The translations under genes were made by a program, and so were the position numbers. Shown one piece after another: positions 11,998 through 47,274 of a stretch of DNA of 64,000 nt (positions within the stretch are counted from its first letter, which is position 1; each line of letters begins with the position of its first letter). Source of the stretch: Klebsormidium nitens. Its lineage: Eukaryota; Plantae; Klebsormidiophyceae. The DNA lies in the NCBI GenBank assembly GCA_000708835.1, contig DF237315.1, positions 30,743-94,742 on the forward strand. Direction: 5' to 3'. The notes below the pieces were generated by a model. That model was given only the letters and a program-made list of their open reading frames with translations. It did no database searches and had not been told where the DNA came from.

Positions 11998-12992
11998 GTT
12001 GCTAGCGGTCCGGATATCCCCACCGCTTAGGAAAGGGATAGGAGCTTTGCAAAATGAAGATTCGAGCAGCCTTGTATGCTAGGTGCGCTGCAATCAGTAC
12101 TGGTAGGAGGTAGACGAAAGCTGCAAGTGATAGTCTTTGATTGACGGCTCCGACGTATGTCGGCCAATGAACGAGGTTCAACCGATTGAACTATCCAGTT
12201 ACTGCACGCGATTCTTTGTCCTAGGACACGACAACCTGAGCCAAGCAAAGTAAAGAACATACTTTCTGAGGCATTCGACGCTCGGAAGCAGTCAGTCCTC
12301 CAAGTATACAACACTTTGGGCTGTTGCTTTCCTAGAATTATCTTGCCAGCTGAAAAGTCTGTCATGCCTCGCAAGTTGAAGAAGTTAACATGGATACTCT
12401 CCTCTCCTTGAAACTCTGCACGTGGCGCGCGCTCCGTTGGTGTGCACGTTGGACGGGTGGCATATACTTTGATCGTTCATGACTCATGCCCAAATATTAG
12501 TTGGCTCATGATGGCACCTGTCACGCGTAAGGATTCTTCAATGAGTTACTCTACAGCTGCAACTTCGCGATAATCGTTGCTATAATGTTGTATGTATACC
12601 TGCCTTTTGATGCGCAATTTTTTGATGCGCAATTAAGCACTTTGCAGATCTCAATGATCGCCGGCTGGCCCATTCAATATCTAGCTACGTATATCTGTCC
12701 GTTCAGTGGCCGAACTAGAATAGGCGCGGAGTTGGGGCTGCTAAAACTCGTGGAATACTCGACTCATCGATATACATGATCCATTGCATGACAGCCACAT
12801 GTATAGGAAATGACGTACGTGAAAGTGTTTACTTGGAATGGCTAGGTTTGGACGTTGCAGGTTTTCATTGCTTCTAAAAGTGGCAATATGCGGGGGACTC
12901 GGGCTGCGCCATTTCTTTCCACATCCCCCATTGGGCAGTACTTAGCCGAGTCTTTTGCACAACAAGGCTTTGCCACCTGTACCCACTTGGCA

Positions 12993-15069
12993 CTACTTGC
13001 TCTGCTCTAGTACGCGGGTCTGCTCCGCGAGAATTTCCGTTATGGAGGTTGCTTCGGGGTCCTGCGAGACGCGAGCTAGTCCATATAAGCAAACGTACTC
13101 AAGATAAGCTACGCGGATCAACCACGCTTCATCGCGCTTTACATCTGCGCAGGACAGTACGTTGCAAACCCGACCACGTTTATCGAGCTTTGCATCTGCG
13201 CAGGACGATAAGTTGCAACAAACAGCGCTGTTGATTACCCGGTTAAAGATGCTTTGACAACGGTGAGGAGTAGTATGATAGCGTGACAATCAACAAGACC
13301 CTAAAGGCTCCTCTAGAGCGCAGAGGCTATAGAAGGCGAGCTGATGCGATACGCTCACGTGGCAAGCTCACCTGAACAAACTTGTCAATCGACTGCTGGT
13401 CGGGAAAGGGCGGTCCGTTGAAGCCGGCCCCGCACAACACCAGGTGAATCTCGCGCTCTCTGTCCAGTTGGGCAAACCTTATGCTCCTTTCCCGCTCGTG
13501 CGCCTCTAATGCATCCAAGATCAAGCGTTCCCACTCGGCGAGGCTCGGGCCTGACTCCGCCACAACGAAAGCCCGCACTGTCTCCAGGAAAGCGGTCGGC
13601 TCATCTGCGTCTAGCATTTTGACCACGCTCACCTCTGGCCTCCCTACTTTAAAGCTTCGGGAGTAGTCTTTGAAGGCTTTGTAATACTTGACATCCCCAA
13701 TCAGCGGAGAAGCTATTACTGTCACGGGCCAGACGCTCTTCAACTCCGCGAGTCTCCGCTCAATCTGTATGAGCTGATCTAGCGTCAGAGCCCTGACGAG
13801 CGGCCGTTCCGTTGCAGGGTCGAAGCTCCGCTCTCCGAGCATGAAGCGGATCGCGAAAGCGACGGCTTCCGCCGGATCCAACCGCAGCTTCGCCGGGAGA
13901 CACCGAAAGCAGTCCCAGTCTGAGCGATCCAGGTCGGGGGAAACCGGTGTGATGCAGGGGAAGCCAGCCATTCCGAGCACAAGGTGACCGGAAAGGCACA
14001 CGAATCCGGTCATGAGCATGTATCGTCCGTTGGCAAAGTTTGTCTCGTCCGGATTGTCTGCCCTGACATCCGCCAGAAGATGGTCGTAGGATTCCGCTGT
14101 GTAAGGACCGATAAAGGAGGAGTCGGGGAGAGGAAATGTCTGCGCGCCACAGTAGGGGCAAGCCGCGGCGAAGTCTTCGTCCAGCTCCGAAAAGTTACCG
14201 TATCCCACTCCTTCGTACTCGCTTGTTGGTGTTGTCGTCTCCTTCGAGCTGACCTCATTTTCCCCCTTTCCCGAATTCAAGCTGGTGTCTTGAGCGAAAT
14301 CGGGGGCTTCATCTTTCACCTCAAACAGCTCATACCCTCCCCCCCAATCCAAGTTCTCTTCACCCAGCTTCTCCTTCCGGTTCAGACACGCCGCTGCCCC
14401 GGTCGCTTGAGCGATCTCCGAGCGCTCAAAGTTTCTGAGCATGCCCCGAAACGGCAGGACGGGCGGCCGGGACACATACTCGTGCGTACCTTCCCGACGA
14501 AGCGCGGCGCGGTGGTACCTCTCACAGTACGACCGGCGCGCGACGAAGATCTCGTCTCCCCAAAAACGAGCGTCCAGAGACAGGGTCTGTCTCGCTTCTT
14601 CCCGCGAAACCCTGTGGAAACCTCTGGGCAGCTCTGTTTCGACGTGCCCCCGGCACTCGGTCCATTCGTACCGTCCCCATAGCGCGTCAGACTCCAACAC
14701 CGGCTCGAAGGTCGGGAATAGAATTCCCGGGCAGTAGACAAGCAGCTTGAACAGCCCCCTCCATCCGCCCGGGGGATCCCCCGCCCCTGGATCGTAGTAA
14801 CCCAGCTCCTCAACCAGCCCTGCTGCATGCGTCATGCACAGCTCCTTCCAGGTGACGTCATCCAAGATCTGACGCCACTCCTTGCAGACTGCTCCTAACG
14901 GGACAAGGTCTTTTGGATGGGGCCCTACTTTGGCAAAGACTCGCTGCAGGATGTCTGGGGCCAGATATGGAAGAGCACTGCGCGCTTCTGAAACGCCATA
15001 CTCTGCTTCAACATCTCCGGAAGAGGAGAAAAATGAGCAGGGATTGCGGAGCTGTGCGGTACGCTGCAT
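12993..15069 (-). CDS. EID1-like F-box protein, copy 1 (terminal zinc finger lost)
   Basis: F-box LAPDILQRVFAKV...LGAVCKEWRQIL. EID1/EDL-family blocks WKELC, GW..LFKLLVYCPG, FRG.LRNF..S, CPYC, FVCLSGH. Large exon 15069-13372 plus terminal exon 13061-12993 (DPEATSITEILAEQ...K*). The true start may lie in an upstream exon. Confidence 0.8.
13121..13218. repeat. Imperfect 52-bp tandem duplication in the copy-1 intron
   Basis: accacgcttcatcgcgctttacatctgcgcaggac...gttgcaa (13121) and accacgtttatcgagctttgcatctgcgcaggac...gttgcaa (13173). Confidence 0.8.
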
Positions 15070-15360: not shown

Positions 15361-15443
15361 TTGCTCGCGCGGGGCGCCTGCTCGATCATTAAGAGACTCA
15401 CGCGTGTCATCAAGTGCAGGCAAGTGTAGTCGAACAGCTGACC

Positions 15444-16790
15444 ATGGGGGGAAGTCAAGGGGGGCGGAAGCGCCGTCAAAGGGCGGCACGGAGCTCGAAC
15501 GAAGCCGGTCAAGCTGGTGACAGCGTCTTTGATGCATTATATCCAGAGCTTCTGGACTGCATCTTGCGGCGGGCGGCGGTCCACAGCTCGCGGGCTTGGA
15601 AACGGTTGGCTCTGGTGAACAAAGCCTTCCAAGACTCTGCACTGCGCTGCTCAGGAACCTTGGTGCTCCGCCGAGGGGGTCTGCTGACAAAGGGGCCGTT
15701 GAAGCTGCGACCTCTGCAGGGCGCAGAGGCGTGTGCTGCCCTTTCCAAAGAGATCGGCGCTCGGCCGAGGGTTTCGAGGCTGGTCCTGAAGGGGGACGTC
15801 AAGCTTGCTGCCGCTTTTTTGCCCGCCATTTTAGAGTTTGGAGCCCGCTGGATCTCCTTGGAGGTAGATGCTCCTGAAACACACTTTGCGAGATATTTGG
15901 ATCTACTTCCCAAACTGCAGGGATCTTTGAGACGGCTGAAGATCAGTATCAGACGATACTATAACGGTGACAGTGATAGGAGAAGCAACAGCAATGCACG
16001 CCTAGACTTAAGCGACGTCTTGAGGGAATTCCCGGACCTCGAGAGCCTCACCATCAAGGGTGGACAACCACTGGCACTTCCAGCAAGCAAGCAGGGAAAT
16101 GATCCGGACGCAGAGGACTGGGAACTGCCAAGCAGCAAGCTTCGTAGTCTAAGCATTAGCGAACCAGGTGTTTGGGATCTGCAGCAGTTCATCTCCTACC
16201 TCCCAGCTTGCGTTTGCAACCTGCGCTTGTTGAGGTTGCATTGTTCCGTCAGCTCTCAACGTATTTGGCACCGAGTCATAGCTCGGCACACCACCTTTTT
16301 GCCCCTGACTCAACTGCAGACATTGCAACTCGATGTACATTATGACAAGACGCTCTCGAGTGCCCTGCTGGAGGAGGTCACAGACCGGTGCACGTGCTTG
16401 CGCCAGCTTTTCCTTTTCTGCTACCCCCGTGTCTCTTACTCTTCGAGGCCCCCTCTGAAGCTTCCCAACTTTGCAGAGAAGTGTCCCGAATTGGAGCGCC
16501 TTGTAGTCAGTCAAGGCGGATCGGTTAATAGCTCTAGTGAGTTCGTACAGATTCTTCGCGAAAGAGGCGTAGCTGTACCTTCCAGAGCGCAGCAAAACAC
16601 CAAGATTCTGATTCTTGAAGACGAAGACAACGAACACGCAGAAAAAGTCGGCAAACGATGCTCCGTCACTTCTCTCACTTGCATCGGTTTGTTTTGGGCA
16701 ACTCCAATTAATCTGAACGATCCTGTAAATCGCAAGCGCGCTGTTGGGAAGCCTACAGCTGTTCAGAAGTGGTGCGACGCTTTTTTGTAG
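15444..16790 (+). CDS. F-box-like / LRR (RNI-like) protein, copy B1, intronless
   Basis: Uninterrupted ORF, first ATG at 15444. Basic RKRR NLS-like patch, F-box-like LYPELLDCILRRAA...W..LALVNKAF, repeated LxxLxL units (FPDLESLTIK, LRSLSIS, LQTLQLD, CPELERLVV). Confidence 0.75.
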   Translation: MGGSQGGRKRRQRAARSSNEAGQAGDSVFDALYPELLDCILRRAAVHSSRAWKRLALVNKAFQDSALRCSGTLVLRRGGLLTKGPLKLRPLQGAEACAALSKEIGARPRVSRLVLKGDVKLAAAFLPAILEFGARWISLEVDAPETHFARYLDLLPKLQGSLRRLKISIRRYYNGDSDRRSNSNARLDLSDVLREFPDLESLTIKGGQPLALPASKQGNDPDAEDWELPSSKLRSLSISEPGVWDLQQFISYLPACVCNLRLLRLHCSVSSQRIWHRVIARHTTFLPLTQLQTLQLDVHYDKTLSSALLEEVTDRCTCLRQLFLFCYPRVSYSSRPPLKLPNFAEKCPELERLVVSQGGSVNSSSEFVQILRERGVAVPSRAQQNTKILILEDEDNEHAEKVGKRCSVTSLTCIGLFWATPINLNDPVNRKRAVGKPTAVQKWCDAFL

Positions 16791-17789: not shown

Positions 17790-19900
17790 CTGCAACACGT
17801 CATGTAAGCTCGATCGGGGGCAGCGCTCTGCTGAGTTGTGTACAAAAGCTTAAGAGTCTGTGACCACTACGCACTCATTTCTCAATCTTTTGACTACGCG
17901 GACCTGCTGATCTAAAAACCTCCACCACGGAGATAAGCATGCAGTCCTGTAAAAGAAGCTGAAACCGTTAGCCTTGACAGCGCGCGACGCTGACCACCTT
18001 CACCTGTTCATTCGAGGCCGGTGAGAAATGACCTGTAGTATTCAATAAGCAACACGTTCATGAGTCAGTATCTGGAAAAGCAACTTCTGCTTGACGTTGA
18101 CCTTTTGAGTGGCCACACGACGCGACAGATTCAAAGATGGCTCCCCAATCCAGGACTGAGGAGCCTTTGGTCCAACAATAAAGGATGAAATGCTCAAACC
18201 TCAGTCCTCAACGGATCCGCAGGACCCCTTCTCGGCCTAAGCCTCTAACTGACCCGGAACCGTCTCAGACTTTCCACCCTCTTACAATCTCAAGAGTCGA
18301 GACAGAACTTCTAAAGTATGAGTCTTCTGACAAAGGATACCTCAACGAATGTACGCGCCCCACGTGGCATGAAACTCACCTCCATATTCGTTTCAACCGC
18401 TTGGTCCGGAACTAGGGGGAGTGGAAGCCGGCATCACGCATCGCTCGCTGGCTTCGGCAGTCCCTACTGCACGGGACATTTTTTGCTTCTCCTCACGCTC
18501 GTGCGTTTCAAAAGCTTCCAAGATTGAGCGCTTGCATTCGGCAGCGGTCATGCTTCCGGTCCCAACAAATGCCCCGACAATTTCCAAGAGATCGGCTGGA
18601 ACATTTGATCTTAGCACCTTCATTATGCTGCCGACGCTATAGCGGTGCGGATACATGAGATCCTCGAACACCTTGTAAGAAAGAAGGCGGCCTTTGTCGA
18701 GAGGCCAGATTTCTTTGAGCTGCGTAAGCCTCGCCTCAACGGCCATCACCGTTTCTAGCTCTAAGCTGCTGATGTATCGCTGCCCTTCTTCCCGTGCCAA
18801 GCCTTGCTCTCCGGCCATGAAACGGACCATGAAGGCGACCGCTTCCGCTGGCTGGAGCTGCAGACGGTCGCCGGAATGCGGCACCGCTAGACCGCGGCCG
18901 AAATTTGGATGGCCAGCAACCCCAAGCACCAGGTGGCCGGCAAGGCATACGAAGCCGGTAATCAGCAGAAACCTCCCCTTCCAAACGAAGCCCTCGACAT
19001 GAAAGTCGTTCACGACATCTGACGTCATCACGTCGTAGCTCTCTGCAGCGTACGCCCCCGGGAAGACTATGCTCGGGAGATGGAACGTCTGGCCACCGCA
19101 GTATGGACAGGGGCCGGCGTTTCGTGGGCTTGAAACCTCCGCTTTGGTTTCTTCCCCGCTAGATCCCCTCTGAGACTTGGCCCCTTCTTTCAACCCACTC
19201 TGCGATCCGTCACACGCTTTCCCAGCTACGTTCTCTTGGCTGAACTTGGACGTTGCAGCACTGACACGCATAATTTTGTCGGCTTCGACTTCGTTCTTCT
19301 CGGTCAGAAACGTAGCAGCCCCGGTAACTTCGGCAAGTCCCGAGCTTCTGAAATTCTTGACGACGCCTCTGCAGCAGAAGATGGGAGGGGGGTTGTATTG
19401 GCGCAACAAGCCGCGCTTGCAGGCGGCATCGAAGTGGCAGCACAGACGCGAAACAACAATCTCATCCTCCACGGAAAGGAACAGGGCCTTCTTCGACTCC
19501 ACCCCCTTGCGATATTCCCTGAGTTCTGACTGTACGTGCCCCCGGCCGTAGGTCCAATCGTACTTTGCTTTCAGGGTCTCAGACTGCAACACTGGCTCAA
19601 AGGTCGGGAAGTGAACCCCCGGGCAGTGGACAAGCAGCTTGAACAGCCCCCTCCATCCCCCTGGTGGATCACCCGCCCCCTGGTGGCAGTACCCGAGCTC
19701 CTCCACCAACCCCCCCGCGTACATCAGGCACAGCTCCTTCCAGGTGACGTCATCCAGGACCTGACGCCACTCTTGCAGAATGCTCCCAAGGGGCCAAGGT
19801 CCTTAGGATTGGGCCCTAACTTGGCGAAGATTCGTTGCAGGATGTCTGGGCCTAGATAGGGCAGCGCAGTGCGCGCATCTGCAACGGTACATACTGCTGC
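17790..19900 (-). pseudogene. EID1-like F-box copy 2, disrupted
   Basis: 1-bp deletion inside the F-box (TGC AAG AG TGG at ~19772 versus TGC AAG GAG TGG in copy 1). Further frame disruption near 18400-18450. Decayed terminal exon (…ECVVVTDS*) at ~17790-17947. Confidence 0.75.
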
Positions 19901-20370: not shown

Positions 20371-20557
20371 TTTGGAGAATGAAACAGGACGGTACGTCAC
20401 GTTTCGATCCCTCTCCAACGCCCTGGACGTCCCTGCTCATTACTGTAAAACTTAGACTTGAACTTCGCAGGTGGGCGCTTCTCAGACACGCACCATTTAA
20501 GGGTCTCTTTTAAGTGCAGGCGTGTTCCTCGTTTCAGCCTGCTCTTTGCGCCCTTCC

Positions 20558-21913
20558 ATGGCGGGTAGTCATGTAAGGCGAAAGCGCCGCCAGAGGGCGG
20601 CGGCTGAGAGCGCCGCAGCTGATCAACTTGGTGGCGACAGCATCTTTGATACACTTCTGCCGGAGCTTCTGGACTGCATATTGCGCCGCGCGGCGGGGCA
20701 GAGCTCGTTGGCCTGGAAACGCATATCCTTGGTTAACAGGGCCTTCCAAGAGTCTCTTATGCGCTCCTCAGAAACGTTGGTGATCCGCCGAGGGGGCCCG
20801 CTGACTAAGGGCCCGCTGAAGCTGCGACCGCTGCAGGGCGCTGATGCATGCGCTGCTCTTTCAAAGGAGATTGACGCAAGGCCGAGGGTTTCGAAGCTGG
20901 TCTTGAAGGCGGACGCCAAGACTGTTGCCGCTCATTCGCCCGCCATCTTAGAGTTTGGACCCCGGTGGATCTCGGTGGAGGTGGACGTTCCTGAGCCGCA
21001 CTTCACGGGTGTCATGGAGCTTCTTCCGAACCTGGAGAGCTCCATGAGACGACTGACCATCAGGGTTCGACAAAAGGTCACCGGTTACATGTATCAGGGC
21101 GGCAAGAGCATCGCACACCTGGACATAGGCGTCGTCGTGCGAGCTTTTCCGGACCTCAAGAGACTCAACATCAAAGGAGCATACCTTCTCCAAGTTCCAG
21201 CCAGCAAGAACGATGCATTAAACGCTGAGGACTCATTGAGCTGTAAACACAGTAGCCTCAGCATCCGCGAGCCAGGAGTTTGGGATTTGCAGCAGGGTTT
21301 GTCCTACCTACCAGCTTGCCTAACCAGCCTCCGCTCCTTGCGGTTGCAATGCGCGGACGCATTTCCTTTGCACGGGGTTCGAGCTCAGCATATCTCTTTT
21401 GCGCCCCTCATGCAATTGCAGACACTGCGGCTCGATGTGCGTCACAATATGACGCTCTCCAGTTCTCTGTTGGAGGAGGTCGCAGAGCAGTGCGTTTGCC
21501 TGCGGCAGCTTCTAGTTTTCGTCAGCCCGTGTGCCTCCTACGCTTCGAGGCCCTCTGCGAAACTTCCCAACTTTGCAGAGAAGTGCCCAGACCTAGAGCG
21601 CCTTGTAATCAGTCAAGGCGGGACGGTTGCCAGCCCTGGGTTTGTGGAGCTGTTCCGCGAACACGGCCTAGCTGTGCCTTCGAAGTATTCGAGCACGCAG
21701 CGAGACACCAAGATTGTAATCCTTGAAGACGGAGACACCGAACACGCGGGACGCTGCGGCAAGCGATGCTCCGTGGCTATTTTCACTTGCATCATCTCAA
21801 TCTGGGCAGACCCGGTCGATATCAACGATCCTGCGACCCGCAAGCGCGCTGTCGGGAAGCCCGCAACGGTTAAGAAGTGGTGTGACGCGTTCTGTGAGAC
21901 AGAAGGCCCTTAA
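20558..21913 (+). CDS. F-box-like / LRR (RNI-like) protein, copy B2, intronless
   Basis: Intact ORF, ATG at 20558, clearly paralogous to B1 (LLPELLDCILRRAA, GPLKLRPLQGA, KLPNFAEKCP.LERLV.SQGG, RKRAVGKP..V.KWCDAF). Confidence 0.75.
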   Translation: MAGSHVRRKRRQRAAAESAAADQLGGDSIFDTLLPELLDCILRRAAGQSSLAWKRISLVNRAFQESLMRSSETLVIRRGGPLTKGPLKLRPLQGADACAALSKEIDARPRVSKLVLKADAKTVAAHSPAILEFGPRWISVEVDVPEPHFTGVMELLPNLESSMRRLTIRVRQKVTGYMYQGGKSIAHLDIGVVVRAFPDLKRLNIKGAYLLQVPASKNDALNAEDSLSCKHSSLSIREPGVWDLQQGLSYLPACLTSLRSLRLQCADAFPLHGVRAQHISFAPLMQLQTLRLDVRHNMTLSSSLLEEVAEQCVCLRQLLVFVSPCASYASRPSAKLPNFAEKCPDLERLVISQGGTVASPGFVELFREHGLAVPSKYSSTQRDTKIVILEDGDTEHAGRCGKRCSVAIFTCIISIWADPVDINDPATRKRAVGKPATVKKWCDAFCETEGP

Positions 21914-27739: not shown

Positions 27740-30207
27740 ATGGCGAGGACCAAGCAGACGGCCAGGAAGTGCAGTGGTGGCGGAAGCAGGTTCCGAAGAT
27801 CGCCACCTCCCCTTGTGGCCAGTGACTCACGTCCAACGGGCAAGGCGTACTTAGAAGTGCTCAGGCAGCTCGAGCAGTCTCAGAGTCCCGTGTCCTCCGA
27901 GCACGTGACTGGTGTGGTTGCTGGAGTGATCGAGCAGAGCGTTTCGGACGCCCGCACCGCTCTGCCTGATCTGGGCCCCGACCTCCTCCAGCGCATCTTT
28001 GCAAAAGTGGGGCCGCATCCAAAGGACTTGGTTCCCCTTGGAGCCGTAAGCAAGGAGTGGCGTCAGGTTCTGAATGAAAGCACGTGGAAGGAGCTGTGCT
28101 TGGAGCATGCGGGGGGTTTGATCGAGGAGCTCGGGTATAGCAACAAGGCGGACGGGCCCCTGGGAGGATGGGCTGGGTTATACAAAGTCTTAGTGTATTG
28201 TCCAGGGTGTCACCTCCCAACATTTGAGCCTGTACTGCAAGCGGAAGCTTTGCGTGAGGACTACAACTGGACGCATGGCCGGGGCCATGTGGAAGCAGCT
28301 CCAAAGGGGTTTTGCAAGGGAAAGGAAGCGAAAGAGGCTCTGTATCTAGCAACCTCAGATGAGGTGGTCATCTCGCGCCTCTGCTCTCATAGACAGGCGG
28401 TTGAGATGTGCGATGCAGATGAGGCTTCGGCTCCTCCGATCCTGGCTTGCAGGGGCTTCGTCAAGTCCTTTGAGAGCTCAAAGCTTGCCCAAATGAGCGG
28501 GGCCGCTGCATTCTTGAGCAAGAGCATTGAGGCAGCGGGGGCGGCAAGCGGACCCGCAGAGTCTCCTCGCAAAGGAAGTGACCTGGAAGGAGCTGCGATC
28601 ACTTCTAATGTTGAAGGAATGGTAGATAAGGAGGATCTGGATGAGGAAGACTCAAATGCTTTCGACATAGATGACTCTGAAGAGTACTCCTTTGGGGACG
28701 AGGATGAAGGTAGAAGCGAAGGGGAAGCCAGCTCTGACTTGGAGGAAGCCAAGGAACTAGGGCCGCCATGTCTTTACTGCAGCAGCCCAATCTTCGCCCT
28801 GCCTCGCAAAGCCTTCGATCCTCTTTCGCATGTAGACTACGACGAGCTGCTATCAGAGTCTTTCTGTGATGCTTACGACAGGCATGAAGACGGCGATGAT
28901 TCGGAAGAGGACGAGCGCGATGACACAAAGTTTGTGCTAGCGTCGGGGTTTGTGTGCCTCAGCGGCCACATTGTTCTTGGGATGGCTGGATATCCCAAGT
29001 TGGTTGCACTTGGAGTGCCGCACTCTGGAGAAGCTCTGAAGCTTCCGCGTCCGCAAGCAATTGAGTTCCTGCTCAAGTTTTTGGTCGGGAAGCGAGGTTG
29101 GGACCACAGGGAGGGGCACCAGTTCATTCAGGGCCTTGGGCTAGATCAGCTGATCCAAATTGATGCCAGGCTCATGCAAAAGAGGAGGTCTGGCCTGTTG
29201 AGGAACGTGGAAAGTCGGACGATTACAGGACTTTCGGTTTTCTCTATAGAGGGCCGGAGTCTCCCGTGGGCATCGTTGACGTGCTAGAAGCAAAAGTGCC
29301 AGCGAGCCTCTTGGAAGTTGTGCAAGACTTTGTCCTGACGGGGAGTCCCGGCTTTGTCGAGTGCGAGCGGTCCATTTTCGACGCGTTTGAGGCTGTAGAC
29401 CGGAAAGAGGAAGAGGCGATGGCGTGTAGAAACAGAAGACAGGTGGTGGATGAGGCGTTACGCGGGGCAGGTGTAGGGTACCCCTTATGGCAGAATCTTC
29501 CCAAAGACCTGTCAAACACTCTGAAGGCTCATGTTGAAACAGGGAACCCAAGCCTTGCCGAGTGCAACAGTCTAATCCTGGAAGAGCGCGAGACGATCAA
29601 GCAAGAAGAGGAGCGGACCAGAGCTTTGGAACTCAGGATGAAAACAATCTCTGAGGCGTTGCGGCAAGCAGGCTTCGACTCCCAGTACCACCTGGTCCCA
29701 CACCAGCAGTCGCTGAGGGCGTACATAGACGTGAGTCTCACTGCTTTTGTCAATTCACTCAACAAATGATTGTATATACCGAAGAGAGACCCGTGCTATT
29801 ACCTCTGCTGATTGCAGCTTGCTTAGTTTGCATTCGCCTCCAAGCTGTTCTGCACGAATCTGAGCATCAAGAGCAGCTGCTGCATGTCTTCTCCAAATCT
29901 TGTGGTGCCTTGGTTGAGGCAAGGAGTTGGATGGTTTCAATTTGCTGTTTTCATTCATGCCCTAATGATACGCAATTGATGGTTGACTTTGACGTGCACT
30001 CCTTTTCAGGACCCGGGTTCGATTACTGTGGAGGAGGTCGTTGCGCAGCAAAGAGACGTGCGAGTGCAAAGCGGCAACTGTATTGGGGTCACAGACGGCA
30101 GACTTTGTGGAAACAAGGCGGCTCTTGCCTGCTCTAACAAACGTTGCGGGAACTGCTGCCGCAAACTTGTAGAACCCTGCCGTACGGCAAAGCATAGGAA
30201 GTCCTAG
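27740..30207 (+). CDS. EID1-like F-box copy 3 with H3-tail-like N-terminus and terminal Cys finger; one frameshift (pseudogene or homopolymer error)
   Basis: ATG at 27740 gives MARTKQTARKCSGG. Exon 27740-29730, intron, terminal exon 30010-30207. At ~29177-29184 the frame shifts (atgcaaaagaggaggtctgg); one extra A would restore MQKEEVWP, in register with the paralogues. An in-frame ATG also lies ~105 nt upstream. Confidence 0.75.
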
Positions 30208-36740: not shown

Positions 36741-37059
36741 GCACCATGCGCTGGCAGCATTCCGGACGGCTTCAACACTTTTGGACGATGTCCTAAGCAT
36801 GTGACTCGCAGTGTCATTGTGAGCGTGAGTCCTCCAAGACGTGGACTTTGTGCAGCACTGCGGTCACTGCACTTTTGAAAGTTTCGTCCGCAGCTAAGGT
36901 AAAGAGATTCGCTAGGCAGGAGAGATGCACACATCTATCGATGCACAGAGCAGAAAAGACGCAAAATGGGTTGAGCAATGCAGCCCTCTTGAGCGCACGA
37001 GGGGTCCTCGCAATGCTGCAGCCTTTCAAAGGAGATTAGGTAGATTGACAGAGGCCGTG

Positions 37060-39480
37060 CCCTTAGCGGTGGTGGAAGCAAATTCGTAGACAACCACCTC
37101 CTCTTCTGCCCAGCGACTCGCCCAACGGGCAAGGCTTACTTAGAAGTTGCTCAGGCAAGCTCGCAGAGCAGTCTCAGACGCCCATTGCGTCGGAGCCGGC
37201 GGCGGCTGTAGTGGTCAAATGACAGGCATTTCGAACAGCCGCGGATCTTGGCCCCGACCTGCTCCAGCGCATCTTTGTGAAACTGGGGCCGCACCCAAAG
37301 GACTTGGTCCCCTTGGGAGCTGTCAGTAAGCAGTGGCGTCAGGTTCTCGATGAAAGCACGTGGAAGGAGCTGTGCTTGAGGTATGCGGGGGGGCTGGTCG
37401 AGGACCTGGGGTACGGCCATGGTGCAGACGCCTCCTTCGGCGGAGGATGGGCCGGGTTATATAAATTGTTAGTGTACTGCCCAGGGTGTCACTTCCCGAC
37501 ATTTGAGCCTGTGCTGCAGTCGGACGCTTTGAGTCTGAACTACGAGTGGATGCATGGCAGGGGCCATGTGGAAACAGTTGAAAAGGGGTTTTGTAAGGGG
37601 AATGAAACGAACGAGGCCCTGCATCTGGCGACACCAGATGAGATTGTCATCTCGCGCCTGTGCTCACATATCCAGGCGGTAGAAATGTGCGACATACATG
37701 ACGAGTCGGCTCTTCCGATCCTGGCTTGCAGAGGCTTCGTGAAGCGCTTTGAGGGCTCAGAGCTTGCCAAGATGAGCGGGGCCGCCGCGCTTCTGAACCA
37801 GAGGAGGAAAGAATCCAAAGCTGAGGGGGCAGCCAGCTCTGATTCGAAGGAGCCCCAGGAGAAGCCACCGTGTCTTTACTGTGGCAGCCCGACGTTTGCC
37901 CTGCCTCGCCAGGCGTTTGACTCCCGCTTCTCAGACTACGACAATATGATGAGGGAGTCTGTCCATGAAGCTTACGAAAAGCTTGAACAGGGCCATTTCA
38001 CGGATGAGGCGGACGATGACGAAAACGACTCGGTGTTTACTTTAGGGACGGGCTTTGTGTGCCTCACTGGCCACATTGTGCTTGGGATGGCGGGATACCC
38101 CAAGCTAGTTGAAAGCGTACTGCCGCAATCTGGAGAGAGTCTGAAGCTTCAGCGTCCGCAAGCGGTGGACTTCTTGCTGAAATTTGTGGTTGGGGGTGAC
38201 ACTCTGGAACGCGAGGAGGGGCACGAATTCGTGCAAGGCTTGGGGTTAGATCAGCTGATTCAGATTGAGGCCCGGCTTGCGCGACTGAAGAAAGTCTGGC
38301 CGGTGGAGGAGAATAGGGAGTCTGAAAAGGAGAACGAGGGGCCTGCCGATGCAAACCAGGCCAAAAAAGATCCTGAGAAATCCCTTGAGGACAATGAGGA
38401 GATTAGATACAAAACTTTTGGATACATGTATCTGAGAGGCGACTCTCTTGCGGGAATTGTAGATCTGCTAGGAGCAAGCGTGCCAGCCGATCTCTTGAAA
38501 GCCTTGCAGGATTTCGTTCTGACAGGGAGTACGAACCTTGCGGAGTGTGAGCGTTTGGTTTTAGAGGAGTTCGAAACCCAGAGGTGCAAGAAGGAGGAGG
38601 ATAAGGCCCGTAGGTTCAAAAGTGCTGCGGCAGAGGAGGCGTTGCGTGAGGCAGGTTTTAAGCACCCCTTTCTGGATCTTCCAAGCAGCCTTTCGACTAT
38701 GCTGAAGGCTTTTGTAGAAACGGGTTTTCCAAGCCTTGCAGAGTACGAACGGCTGATTTTGGAAGAGCGCGAAGTGCATCAGCAGCAAGAGGAGCGGAAG
38801 AAAGTTTTGGAACTTAGAAAGAACACAGTCTATCTGGCATTGCAGCAGGCTGGCTTTACCCCCCCAATGGTTCCGCACCCGCAGTCGCTGAGTGCTTACA
38901 TCGGGGTGAGTGTGCCACTCATTCAGAATGTTGTTCTGAGTACCCTGTTTGTCGAACTCGAAGCAAGTAACCTGGTTTCAAACTCGAAGCACAGGCCCGC
39001 ACTGCTAAACGTGTTGATTGCAGCTTGCTAATTATGCAATTCAAGTTTGCGGTCGCTCTCGAAGTTGTCCTGCTGTTCAGATTGCATCCGAATCATTGCT
39101 ACCTGCCTATCTTGGTCGTTCAGTGCCTTGCCTGAAGCAAGCATCTGAGTTGTTTGGACCGATGCTTGCTGCTTAACAAAGTAACCCAGCAGTAGTTGTC
39201 TATGGCTGACTAGACATGCACGTTTTTGCAGGATTCCAGTGCAATCACTTTGGAGGAGGTCGTTGCGCAGCAAAAGAGCGCGCAAGTGCAGAGCGTAAAC
39301 GGAGTGGAGCTTGCTGCACCACGAACGAGTGCACAAGAGCAGAGCCACAAATGCGCAGTGGTCACAGACGGCAAAGGCTGTAAGCATCCGGCGGCTAAAG
39401 GGTGCTCCAATGGAGGGTGCGGGCCTTGCTGTCGTAAAGCTGCGGAACCCTGCCGGTTAGGAAAGCACAGGAAGACCTAG
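37060..39480 (+). pseudogene. EID1-like F-box copy 4: body and terminal finger intact, 5' end (ATG/H3-like tail) eroded
   Basis: Open frame 37223-38905 plus terminal exon 39232-39480. An in-frame TGA lies at 37220 just upstream of the F-box. The H3-like segment survives only as ...agcggtggtggaagc, without its ATG. The gene could still be expressed through an unrecognised upstream exon. Confidence 0.6.
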
Positions 39481-44624: not shown

Positions 44625-47274
44625 ATGGCGAGGACCAAGCAAACTGCCAGGAAGTGCAGTGGTGGCGGAAGCAGGTTCCGGAAAGAAACCCCTCGTGTGG
44701 CCAGCGATACACGTCCCACAGGCAAGGCGTACTTGGAAGCGCTGAAGCAGCTTGCAGCAAAGTCTCAAAGTCCCCTTCCCACCGAGCAGGCGGCTGCTGA
44801 AATATGTGGGGCACCAAAGCAGAGCATTTCAGAGACCCGCACCGCCCTGCCTGATTTGGGCCCAGACCTGCTGCAGCGCATCTTTGCAAAACTGGGGCCG
44901 CACCCAAAGGACTTGGTCCCCTTGGGAGCTGTCAGTAAGCAGTGGCGTCAGGTCTTGAACGAAAGCACGTGGAAGGAGCTGTGCTTGAAGCATGCGGGGG
45001 GGTTGGTTGAGGAGCTTGGGTACAGCCACGGGGCGGATGGGCCCCCCGGAGGCTGGGCTGGGTTGTACAAACTAATAATATGCTGCCCAGGGTGTCACTT
45101 CCCAACCTTTGAGCATGTGCTGCAGGCAAACGCTTTGAGTGAGAACTATGACTGGAGGCATGGCCGGGGCCACGTGCAAGCAGCAACGAAGGGTTTTTTT
45201 AAGGGGAAGGAAGCGAAGGAGGCCCTGTACCTGGCAACCTCAGATGAGATCGTGATCTCGTGCCTGTGCTCTCATGGCCAGGCGGTCGAGATGTGTGACA
45301 TACATGAGGCTTCGGCTCCTCCAATCCTGGCTTGCAGAGGCATCGTCAAGAGCTTCGAGAGCTCAAAGCTTGCTGAATGGAGCGGAGCTGCTGCATTTGC
45401 AAACCAGAAGGGCGAGGCAGCGGGGATAGCAGGGGAGCCTGTAGACTCCTCGAGCACGCAGAATGAAGTGGTGGAAGCGGCGGGTGCTTCTGACGGGGAA
45501 CCGTCTGGCGGCGAGATGGGGGAAGAGGCGGACTTGGACGAGGAAGCTGCCTCTGAGTCCGAAGACTTTGAAGCTTACCCCTCGGGTAGTGAGGGCGAAG
45601 GCTCCGAGGGGGAAGTGAGCTCTGATACAGAGGAGCCCGAGGAAAAGCGGCCGCCCTGTGCTTACTGCGGCAGCCCAACGTTCGCCCTGCCTCCTAAGGC
45701 CTTCAATTCTCAGTTCTCGGATTACGATGATCTGCTGTCGGAGTCCTTCTGTGACGCTTACGACAGGCATGAGCAGGCCCGGTCAATGTATGAGTCGGAC
45801 GACTCGGAAGCGTCGAATAACGACTCCATGTTTGTGCTGGGAACAGGGTTCGTGTGCCTCGAAGGCCACATCGTGCTAGGGGTGGCTGGTTACCCCAAGT
45901 TGGACGAGGTTGCGGTGGTGGACTCTGGAGAAAGTCTGGAGCTCCAGCGGCCGCAAGTGGTGGACTTCTTACTCAAGTTCGTGGTTGGGGGCAAGACCTT
46001 GAGCCGGAAGCAGGGGCATCGATTCATTCGAGGCCTGTTGTTAGATCAGCTGATCCAGATTGAAGTGAGGCTTGTGCAGCTGGCAAAGATCTGGCCGGCG
46101 AAGGAGAAAGAGGGGTGTGACAAGGCGAATGAAGAGTCTGATGGGGCAGATGGGGAGTCTAGTGAGGTCATTAAGGAGCCTGATGAGGAGACTGAGGGAG
46201 TCAATCAAGAGAAAGAGTCCAAGGATTACAAACTTTTTGGATACATGTATAAGAGAGGCAACGATCCTGTGGGCATAGTCGACGTGCTCGGAGCGGGCGT
46301 GCCAGCCGATCTTTTAGAAGGCCTGCAAGCTTTCGTTTTGACAGGAGATCCAGGCCTTGCGGAGTGTGAGCAACCGATTTTGGGGGCGTTTGAGACTCAG
46401 GCGCGAAGAAAGGAGGAGGCGGTCGCCCGGAAGATCAGAAGTGATGCAATGGACAAGGCGATGCGCGGGGCAGGTTTCAAGCAACCCTTCTTTCGGGGCC
46501 TACCCAGCGACCTCTCGAAAACGCTAAAGGCTTTTATCGAAATGGGGGACCCGAGCCTGGCAGAGTGCGAACGTCTGATCCTGGAAGAGCGCGAGTCGCG
46601 CGAGCAGGCAAAGGCTTCGGAGTTGAGAAAGAACACAATCTATCAGGCGCTGCGGCAGGCAGGCTTCCACCCCCCTTCTGTTCCGCACCTGCAGTCGCTG
46701 TGCGCTTACATACAAGTGAGTCGTCACCCCTCTCGTAGATTTACCAGTTGTTGATAGTGAAGCAGAGGTACGGAATGCTAAACTTTCTTATTGCTAGTTG
46801 GTGATAACGCATCTCATGTTTGCAGTCCCTCTCCAGGTTTTTCGATGTTAGTTTTGTGCAACAGAGCAATCGCTGCATGCCTTACTAGTAGTGTTCTAAG
46901 TGTCTTGTCTGTAGCAAGGCTTTGAGCGTTCGGACTGTTGATGTCCAAGATGATAAAAAAGGTGTTAACTTGGTGGTACGCCGTCGAGGTCTTTGGCTGA
47001 CACTGTATGCACTCTCGTCCAGGACCCCGGTGCAATCACTTTCGAGGAGGTAATCGCACAACAAAGGAGCGCGCGAGTGCAAAACGTCGTAAGCAGAGTG
47101 GAGGTTGCCGCGCCGCGAACGAGTGCACAAGAGCAGAGCCACAAATGCGAAGTGGTCACAGACGGCAAAAGTTGTACGAATCAGGCGGCTAAAGGGTGCT
47201 CCAATGATGGGTGCGGGCCTTGCTGCCGGAAAGCTGCAGGACCCTGCCGTCTAGGAAAGCACAGAAAGACCTAG
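44625..47274 (+). CDS. EID1-like F-box copy 5, intact, 780 aa: H3-tail-like N-terminus, F-box, EID1-like domain with acidic insert, helical repeats, SHI-like Cys finger
   Basis: First in-frame ATG at 44625 (MARTKQTARKCSGGGSRFR). Exon 44625-46715 (2091 nt) plus exon 47023-47274 (252 nt) join in frame with GT-AG ends and no stops. Confidence 0.85.

Follow-up and report, generated by a model that had tools for sequence, protein, structure and literature searches.

SRS (SHI/STY) factors are regarded as plant-specific regulators that are defined by a finger and an IGGH domain. STY1 is a DNA-binding activator. We know of no structure of a SHI/STY finger, and to our knowledge the part of STY1 that contacts DNA has no structural resolution. 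F-box proteins bridge SKP1-cullin to substrates.

The SRS finger consensus is CX2CX7CX4CX2C2X6C (PMC9846857, PMC9386158), and the origin of the SRS factors has been placed in the streptophyte ancestor (PMC7027972). In the literature we found no paper on a DUF702-type finger in an F-box protein or on algal EID1-like proteins with such a finger.

The window analysed here is a 64 kb stretch of Klebsormidium nitens DNA, and all coordinates refer to it unless a contig is named. It holds a tandem F-box gene family, the fifth copy of which closes with a short Cys-rich exon. This exon is probably the genuine final coding exon of a long type of EID1-like F-box protein that is specific to Klebsormidium. 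It encodes a C-terminal module of about 39 residues, which is probably related, with divergence, to the SHI/STY/LRP1-type finger.

The tandem F-box array

The main ORFs of copies 1 and 2 were located on the reverse strand (13327-15069 and 18393-19724), and those of copies 3 and 4 on the forward strand (27740-29730 and about 37157-38905). The main exon of copy 5 (44625-46715, forward strand) encodes an H3-like N-terminus, an F-box-like domain (residues 80-122), an EID1-like body, an acidic linker, and two helical repeats. It showed 100% identity to the NCBI protein named 'F-box family protein' of Klebsormidium nitens, and copy 5 was the sole clean full-length gene within the window.

Copy 3 showed a 1-nt frame break near 29170-29180 when compared with its paralogues, after which another frame runs to the donor at 29730. 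The NCBI model P0003 spans this break with an intron (joining GKRG to PESPVG), and possible explanations of the break are a sequencing error, intronisation, and an early pseudogene. In copy 4, frameshifts and a stop at the 5′ end (36900-37270) disrupt both the H3-like N-terminus and the stretch that leads up to the F-box. In the NCBI model P0004, translation begins from an internal Met, and the F-box is missing. The finger exon of copy 4 is nonetheless intact. Interspersed among the EID1-like genes we also observed two paralogous ORFs of another family (15414-16790 and 20522-21913, both on the forward strand), which are possibly leucine-rich-repeat F-box-like proteins.

The EID1-like host protein

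The F-box of copy 5 matched PF12937 (F-box-like) with 32.8-33.4 bits against a cut-off of 24.3. With ESM Atlas features, residues 70-520 of the copy 5 model P0001 gave a value of 0.93 and 180 shared features with EID2_C (PF27778) clusters, and the matched clusters were named 'EID1-like F-box protein 2' and 'Phytochrome A-associated F-box protein'. The paralogues P0006-P0008 carried PF27778 EID2_C in the precomputed table, where it was marked faint. These results point to an EID1-like protein body.

Similarly to land-plant EID1/EDL proteins, the algal proteins have an F-box-like domain followed by what appears to be an EID-type body with the VCL.GH block. Compared with the land-plant proteins (233-385 aa), the algal proteins are longer (530-780 aa) and have in addition the H3-like N-terminus, the acidic linker, the two helical repeats, and the finger exon. 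The original prediction had described land-plant EID1/EDL proteins as ending without such a finger, and this agrees with the matched land-plant clusters of 233-385 aa, for which no finger was listed.

Copies 5 and 3 (44625-44681 and 27740-27796) start with MARTKQTARKCSGGG, a look-alike of the histone H3 tail. Residues 1-111 of copy 5 were matched, at 47% identity, by a divergent gene at L003:9380-9742. In the C-terminal half of copy 5 (45900-46700), after the EID-type body and ahead of the finger exon, two internal helical repeats were visible (VPADLL..L.AFV.TG.PSLAECE..IL), and these VPADLL-type repeats matched no Pfam family.

The terminal finger exon

The terminal exon of copy 5 lies at 47023-47274 on the forward strand, stop codon included, and is part of the NCBI model P0001. 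On its N-terminal side it encodes a short conserved stretch (DPGAIT.EEV.AQQ), which a variable linker connects to the Cys7His finger; the basic end (HRKT) comes last. The finger proper occupies 47146-47262 and has 39 residues, counted from its first Cys through the His. The corresponding exon of copy 4 lies at 39232-39480 (finger at 39352-39468; model P0004) and that of copy 3 at 30010-30207 (finger at 30079-30195; model P0003), both on the forward strand. Besides the finger, this exon encodes about 20-40 further residues, and in copies 3, 4, and 5 only RK[TS] stands between the finger and the stop codon.

The spacing C-x8-C-x7-C-x4-C-x2-CC-x6-C-x4-H, which the original prediction had read in these three terminal exons, was borne out by the translation of all three; the example finger quoted there is that of copy 3. 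A search of the whole 64 kb window in six frames with a loose core pattern (C-x4-C-x2-CC-x4..8-C) gave matches solely at these three exons.

The introns before the finger exons are 279-326 nt long in copies 3, 4, and 5 (29731-30009, 38906-39231, and 46716-47022; 307 nt with GTGAGT...CAG in copy 5). The donors read GTGAGT directly after a codon (at 46716, 38906, and 29731), and the acceptors read YAG followed by GA (at 47022, 39231, and 30009), with a pyrimidine-rich CAG or TAG directly before the finger ORF. The upstream exon closes on a full codon in all three copies, and the intron is therefore in phase 0. A separate phase-0 exon spliced to the F-box ORF had been predicted from the letters, and the NCBI models P0001 (780 aa), P0003 (712 aa), and P0004 (534 aa) make exactly these joins. 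The evidence for splicing consists of these gene models and conservation, and the spliced sequences are NCBI's own models. The genes on L001 and L003, found in the Logan assembly SRR23617307 of another Klebsormidium-like sample, showed the same intron position, splice signals, and finger exon, so that the phase-0 intron has the same position in five genes.

Conservation and loss of the finger

In the five Klebsormidium fingers the seven Cys, an Asp-Gly pair in the first loop, and a Ser-Asn pair after the third Cys were invariant. Over the 45-codon core, dN/dS was 0.20-0.56 (Nei-Gojobori), with synonymous sites saturated towards L003. Synonymous change was in excess, with a Fisher p of 2e-5 for two independent pairs, pooled. 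The finger exon is conserved and under purifying selection, and the copy 5, L001, and L003 genes are intact with the same architecture.

Copy 1 showed a different fate. Its terminal exon (12891-13061, reverse strand) has the same exon start, which is followed by a premature stop and a decayed finger remnant, and the model P0006 ends at that stop. The orthologue of copy 1 on L002 has an early stop too, with a decayed remnant at L002:7751-7900. A further decayed remnant was found at L002:3073-3255, downstream of another F-box gene. These remnants show that the finger was lost repeatedly, in the copy 1 lineage of both species and downstream of another F-box gene. Since remnants are present in the copy 1 lineage, the finger is ancestral to the F-box family and was not a recent gain by copies 3-5. 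The analysis brought up no donor gene for the exon shuffling that the original prediction proposed.

Similarity to SHI/STY fingers

The spacing from the second to the seventh Cys, C-x7-C-x4-C-x2-CC-x6-C, had been described as the same as in SHI/STY fingers, and it does agree with the SRS consensus and with 57 true SHI fingers. These 57 distinct fingers were obtained by scanning JGI metagenome contigs for back-translated CGNQAKKDC, which gave 120 loci of plant DNA (L005-L124). All of them come from genes with the exact CGNQAKKDC motif, and 23 diverse ones were used in the hhalign profile.

Both groups of fingers count seven Cys and one His and have the same C-x7-C-x4-C-x2-CC-x6-C core. Their first loops contain Asn and Ala, the third Cys is followed by a small residue and the CC pair by basic ones, and the terminal His by basic or hydroxyl residues. 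In the first knuckle, all five Klebsormidium fingers have C-x8-C with the invariant Asp-Gly in place of C-x2-C. The terminal spacing is C-x4-H in the three window copies and L001, instead of the C-x2-H of SHI/STY fingers, and C-x2-H in L003. The algal protein has neither the conserved KSTWVPA..RR extension nor the IGGH domain, and its finger forms the very C-terminal end of an F-box protein, compared with a position near the N-terminus of a transcription factor in SRS proteins. A resemblance of the first loop (TDGK) to a WRC domain was weighed and dropped.

In Pfam, the sole family matched at E <= 10 was DUF702 (PF05142), which has the RING-like SHI/STY/SRS finger as its N-terminal part. The matches covered positions 6-34 of the 151 in the profile, with 11.2-14.7 bits and E-values of 0.045-0.54. 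No Pfam match was obtained for two of the five Klebsormidium fingers, and Pfam zf-C3HC3H_KANSL2 gave no match at E <= 10. The sole NCBIfam match was TIGR01623 ('putative zinc finger domain, LRP1 type'), with 9.3-14.7 bits. All scores were under the curated cut-offs of 20.6 bits for PF05142 and 42 bits for TIGR01623, while true SHI finger regions alone reached 85-103 bits on DUF702; the algal finger scores about 85 bits beneath true SHI members. No I.GH (IGGH) motif was found in P0001-P0009, and a stop codon follows the finger. Membership of the SHI/SRS family was rejected on the sub-cut-off scores, the lack of the IGGH motif, and the C-x8-C that replaces the first CxxC.

In the profile-profile comparison with hhalign, the five Klebsormidium fingers matched the 23 genuine SHI fingers with a probability of 91.3% (E 9.4e-7, 38% identity over 29 columns). 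When three fingers from the metagenomic protein P0011, described below, were added, the probability was 95.3% and the match reached the His. In the control, in which the Cys columns were fixed and the others permuted, the mean score was 20.3 (sd 4.6) against the observed 30.9, and 4 of 300 permutations equalled or exceeded the observed score (p ~0.013). About two thirds of the hhalign score is thus Cys spacing alone.

Single fingers were also compared with Cys-fixed shuffles against an HMM of the 57 SHI fingers. The real score was reached by 2 of 500 shuffles for L001, 9 of 500 for copy 3, and 12 of 500 for copy 5. For copy 4 (192/500) and L003 (115/500) the real finger did not beat the shuffles. 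The similarity is mostly Cys spacing, with a modest but significant residue-level part on top (p about 0.01).

In the joint alignment of 32 sequences, six Cys and the His were invariant, the Asn and Ala of the first loop were at least 90% conserved, and the first Cys of the SHI fingers aligned with a Gly of the Klebsormidium fingers. One true SHI finger and L001 have the hexamer CSNRRC in common. The kinship with DUF702 put forward in the original prediction stood in part: hhalign probabilities of 91-95% and DUF702 and TIGR01623 as sole library matches speak for it, whereas the library matches are weak and the fingers fall outside the SRS family.

The mid-finger His of the 'C3HC3H' description was variable in the 57 true SHI fingers (H in 38, Y in 15, N in 3, and F in 1). 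The Asn of the alga is therefore within the variation of the family and is no argument against kinship. With Tyr, Asn, or Phe at this position in a third of the sampled true SHI fingers, the mid-finger His is unlikely to be an obligatory zinc ligand. The variation at the 'C3HC3H' His argues for a Cys7His ligand set, seven Cys and the terminal His, probably in both groups.

Two AF2 runs on the finger, with 8-row and 32-row alignments, gave weak models (pLDDT 59 and 65), and no PDB fold matched them in Foldseek against the PDB or in VIA-align wide. By sequence, the PDB gave chance-level rows only with the single sequence and the profiles (CDCA7 at E 0.32), and with the joint profile none at E <= 1.

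Relatives outside Klebsormidium

The Klebsormidium profile was searched against 1.8 billion representatives. The sole credible finger-bearing match outside Klebsormidium was P0011 (E 9e-4). The other outside match, P0010, is a C2H2 protein and was set aside as probably spurious. No SHI protein was recovered at E <= 0.001 in this set. With 45 residues, the profile is too short to give distant fingers a significant score among 1.8 billion sequences.

P0011 (ENA ERZ27247713, L004:1491-3638) is a metagenomic protein of 715 aa that combines a Fic domain and a RING finger with three fingers in tandem, all spaced canonically (C-x2-C-x7-C-x4-C-x2-CC-x6..8-C-x2-H). Its gene is intronless and adjoins a PAD_porph gene. 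With hhalign, the P0011 fingers matched the Klebsormidium fingers at 93.7% (E 2e-7) and the SHI fingers at 94.2%; the match of P0011 to DUF702 was sub-threshold (17 bits). P0011 has the same core as the Klebsormidium finger, with an invariant Asn next to the third Cys in both, and differs from it by the canonical C-x2-C and C-x2-H, the three tandem copies, and the Fic and RING host. By these profile matches, P0011 links the Klebsormidium and SHI groups of fingers. As the finger type is present in this non-plant-like Fic and RING protein, it is not a streptophyte invention.

A word search with the three-finger region of P0011 gave no match, and the locus search with the alignment A2 gave no relative in metagenomes. 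The ESM Atlas gave several matches, which are to be read as leads only: DUF702 clusters, a 'SHI RELATED SEQUENCE 4' cluster, and fungal Dus (Mucoromycota), Basidiomycota, and giant-virus clusters and KANSL2.

Discussion

The finger would hold eight metal ligands, seven Cys and one His, and in all likelihood these coordinate a pair of zinc ions. The Klebsormidium and SHI/STY/LRP1-type fingers have the core C-x-N-x-A-x3-C-x4-C-x2-CC-x6-C...H in common. In the algal finger, a C-x8-C loop with the invariant Asp-Gly stands in for the first CxxC knuckle, and the loop before the His has four residues in most copies. The F-box would recruit SKP1/cullin, and the finger, basic-flanked at the far end of the protein, may be the surface on which a target protein or nucleic acid docks. 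It is possible that the whole protein acts as a chromatin-directed E3 ubiquitin ligase, as the original prediction proposed.

The main competitor of SHI kinship is that the tail, although a genuine zinc- or metal-binding knot, has no relation to SHI fingers, in which case short Cys-rich motifs would have converged on the same Cys spacing. Such convergence would explain why the library matches are far under the cut-offs, why permutations with fixed Cys already average 20 of the observed hhalign score of 31, and why copy 4 and L003 score no better than shuffles. The different first knuckle and His spacing, and the lack of any SHI protein at E <= 0.001 among the 1.8 billion representatives, also fit it. 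It accounts less well for six identical Cys gaps, for an Asn and an Ala that all three groups of fingers keep at matching inner positions, and for the permutation p of about 0.013. P0011, in which the canonical spacing is complete down to C-x2-C and C-x2-H, matches both sides, and L003 has C-x2-H as well. We consider convergence rather unlikely on this evidence.

The damage within the array raises the question of whether partly pseudogenised genes carry the exon as a dispensable or decaying appendage that has no function of its own. The frame break of copy 3, the damaged 5′ end of copy 4, the loss of the finger by an early stop in copy 1 and its orthologue, and the other remnant at L002:3073-3255 are what such decay would leave. 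A dN/dS well under 1, the retention of all ligands in five genes of two species, and the intact copy 5, L001, and L003 genes of the same architecture speak against it, and we regard it as highly improbable. Scarcely more probable is that the basic Cys-rich end has a role in nuclear import, redox sensing, or metal buffering and not in target recognition, a reading that is compatible with a divergent SHI-type finger on an EID1-like protein. The basic end HRK[TS] and the RK past the CC pair could be a localisation signal, and the tail has no known binding partner; the fixed spacing and two conserved non-Cys positions suit a folded module better than a simple signal.

In a wider reading, the SHI-type finger might be a Cys7His module with two zincs that existed on its own in eukaryotes long before the SRS transcription factors. 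In Klebsormidium it would form the target-docking end of an SCF adaptor with a histone H3 tail mimic, giving a chromatin- or DNA-directed ubiquitin ligase, and the land-plant SRS finger would have been gained from such a module. We hold this full scenario to be speculative and unlikely to apply in all its parts.

A divergent finger on an F-box protein of an early-diverging streptophyte alga, together with a canonical-spacing version on an unrelated Fic and RING protein, suggests that the finger is a portable module that arose before the SRS family. The F-box and the Fic and RING hosts offer two new contexts for testing what the finger binds, and the Klebsormidium gene, which joins an H3-like N-terminus, an F-box, and a finger, is a concrete candidate for biochemistry.
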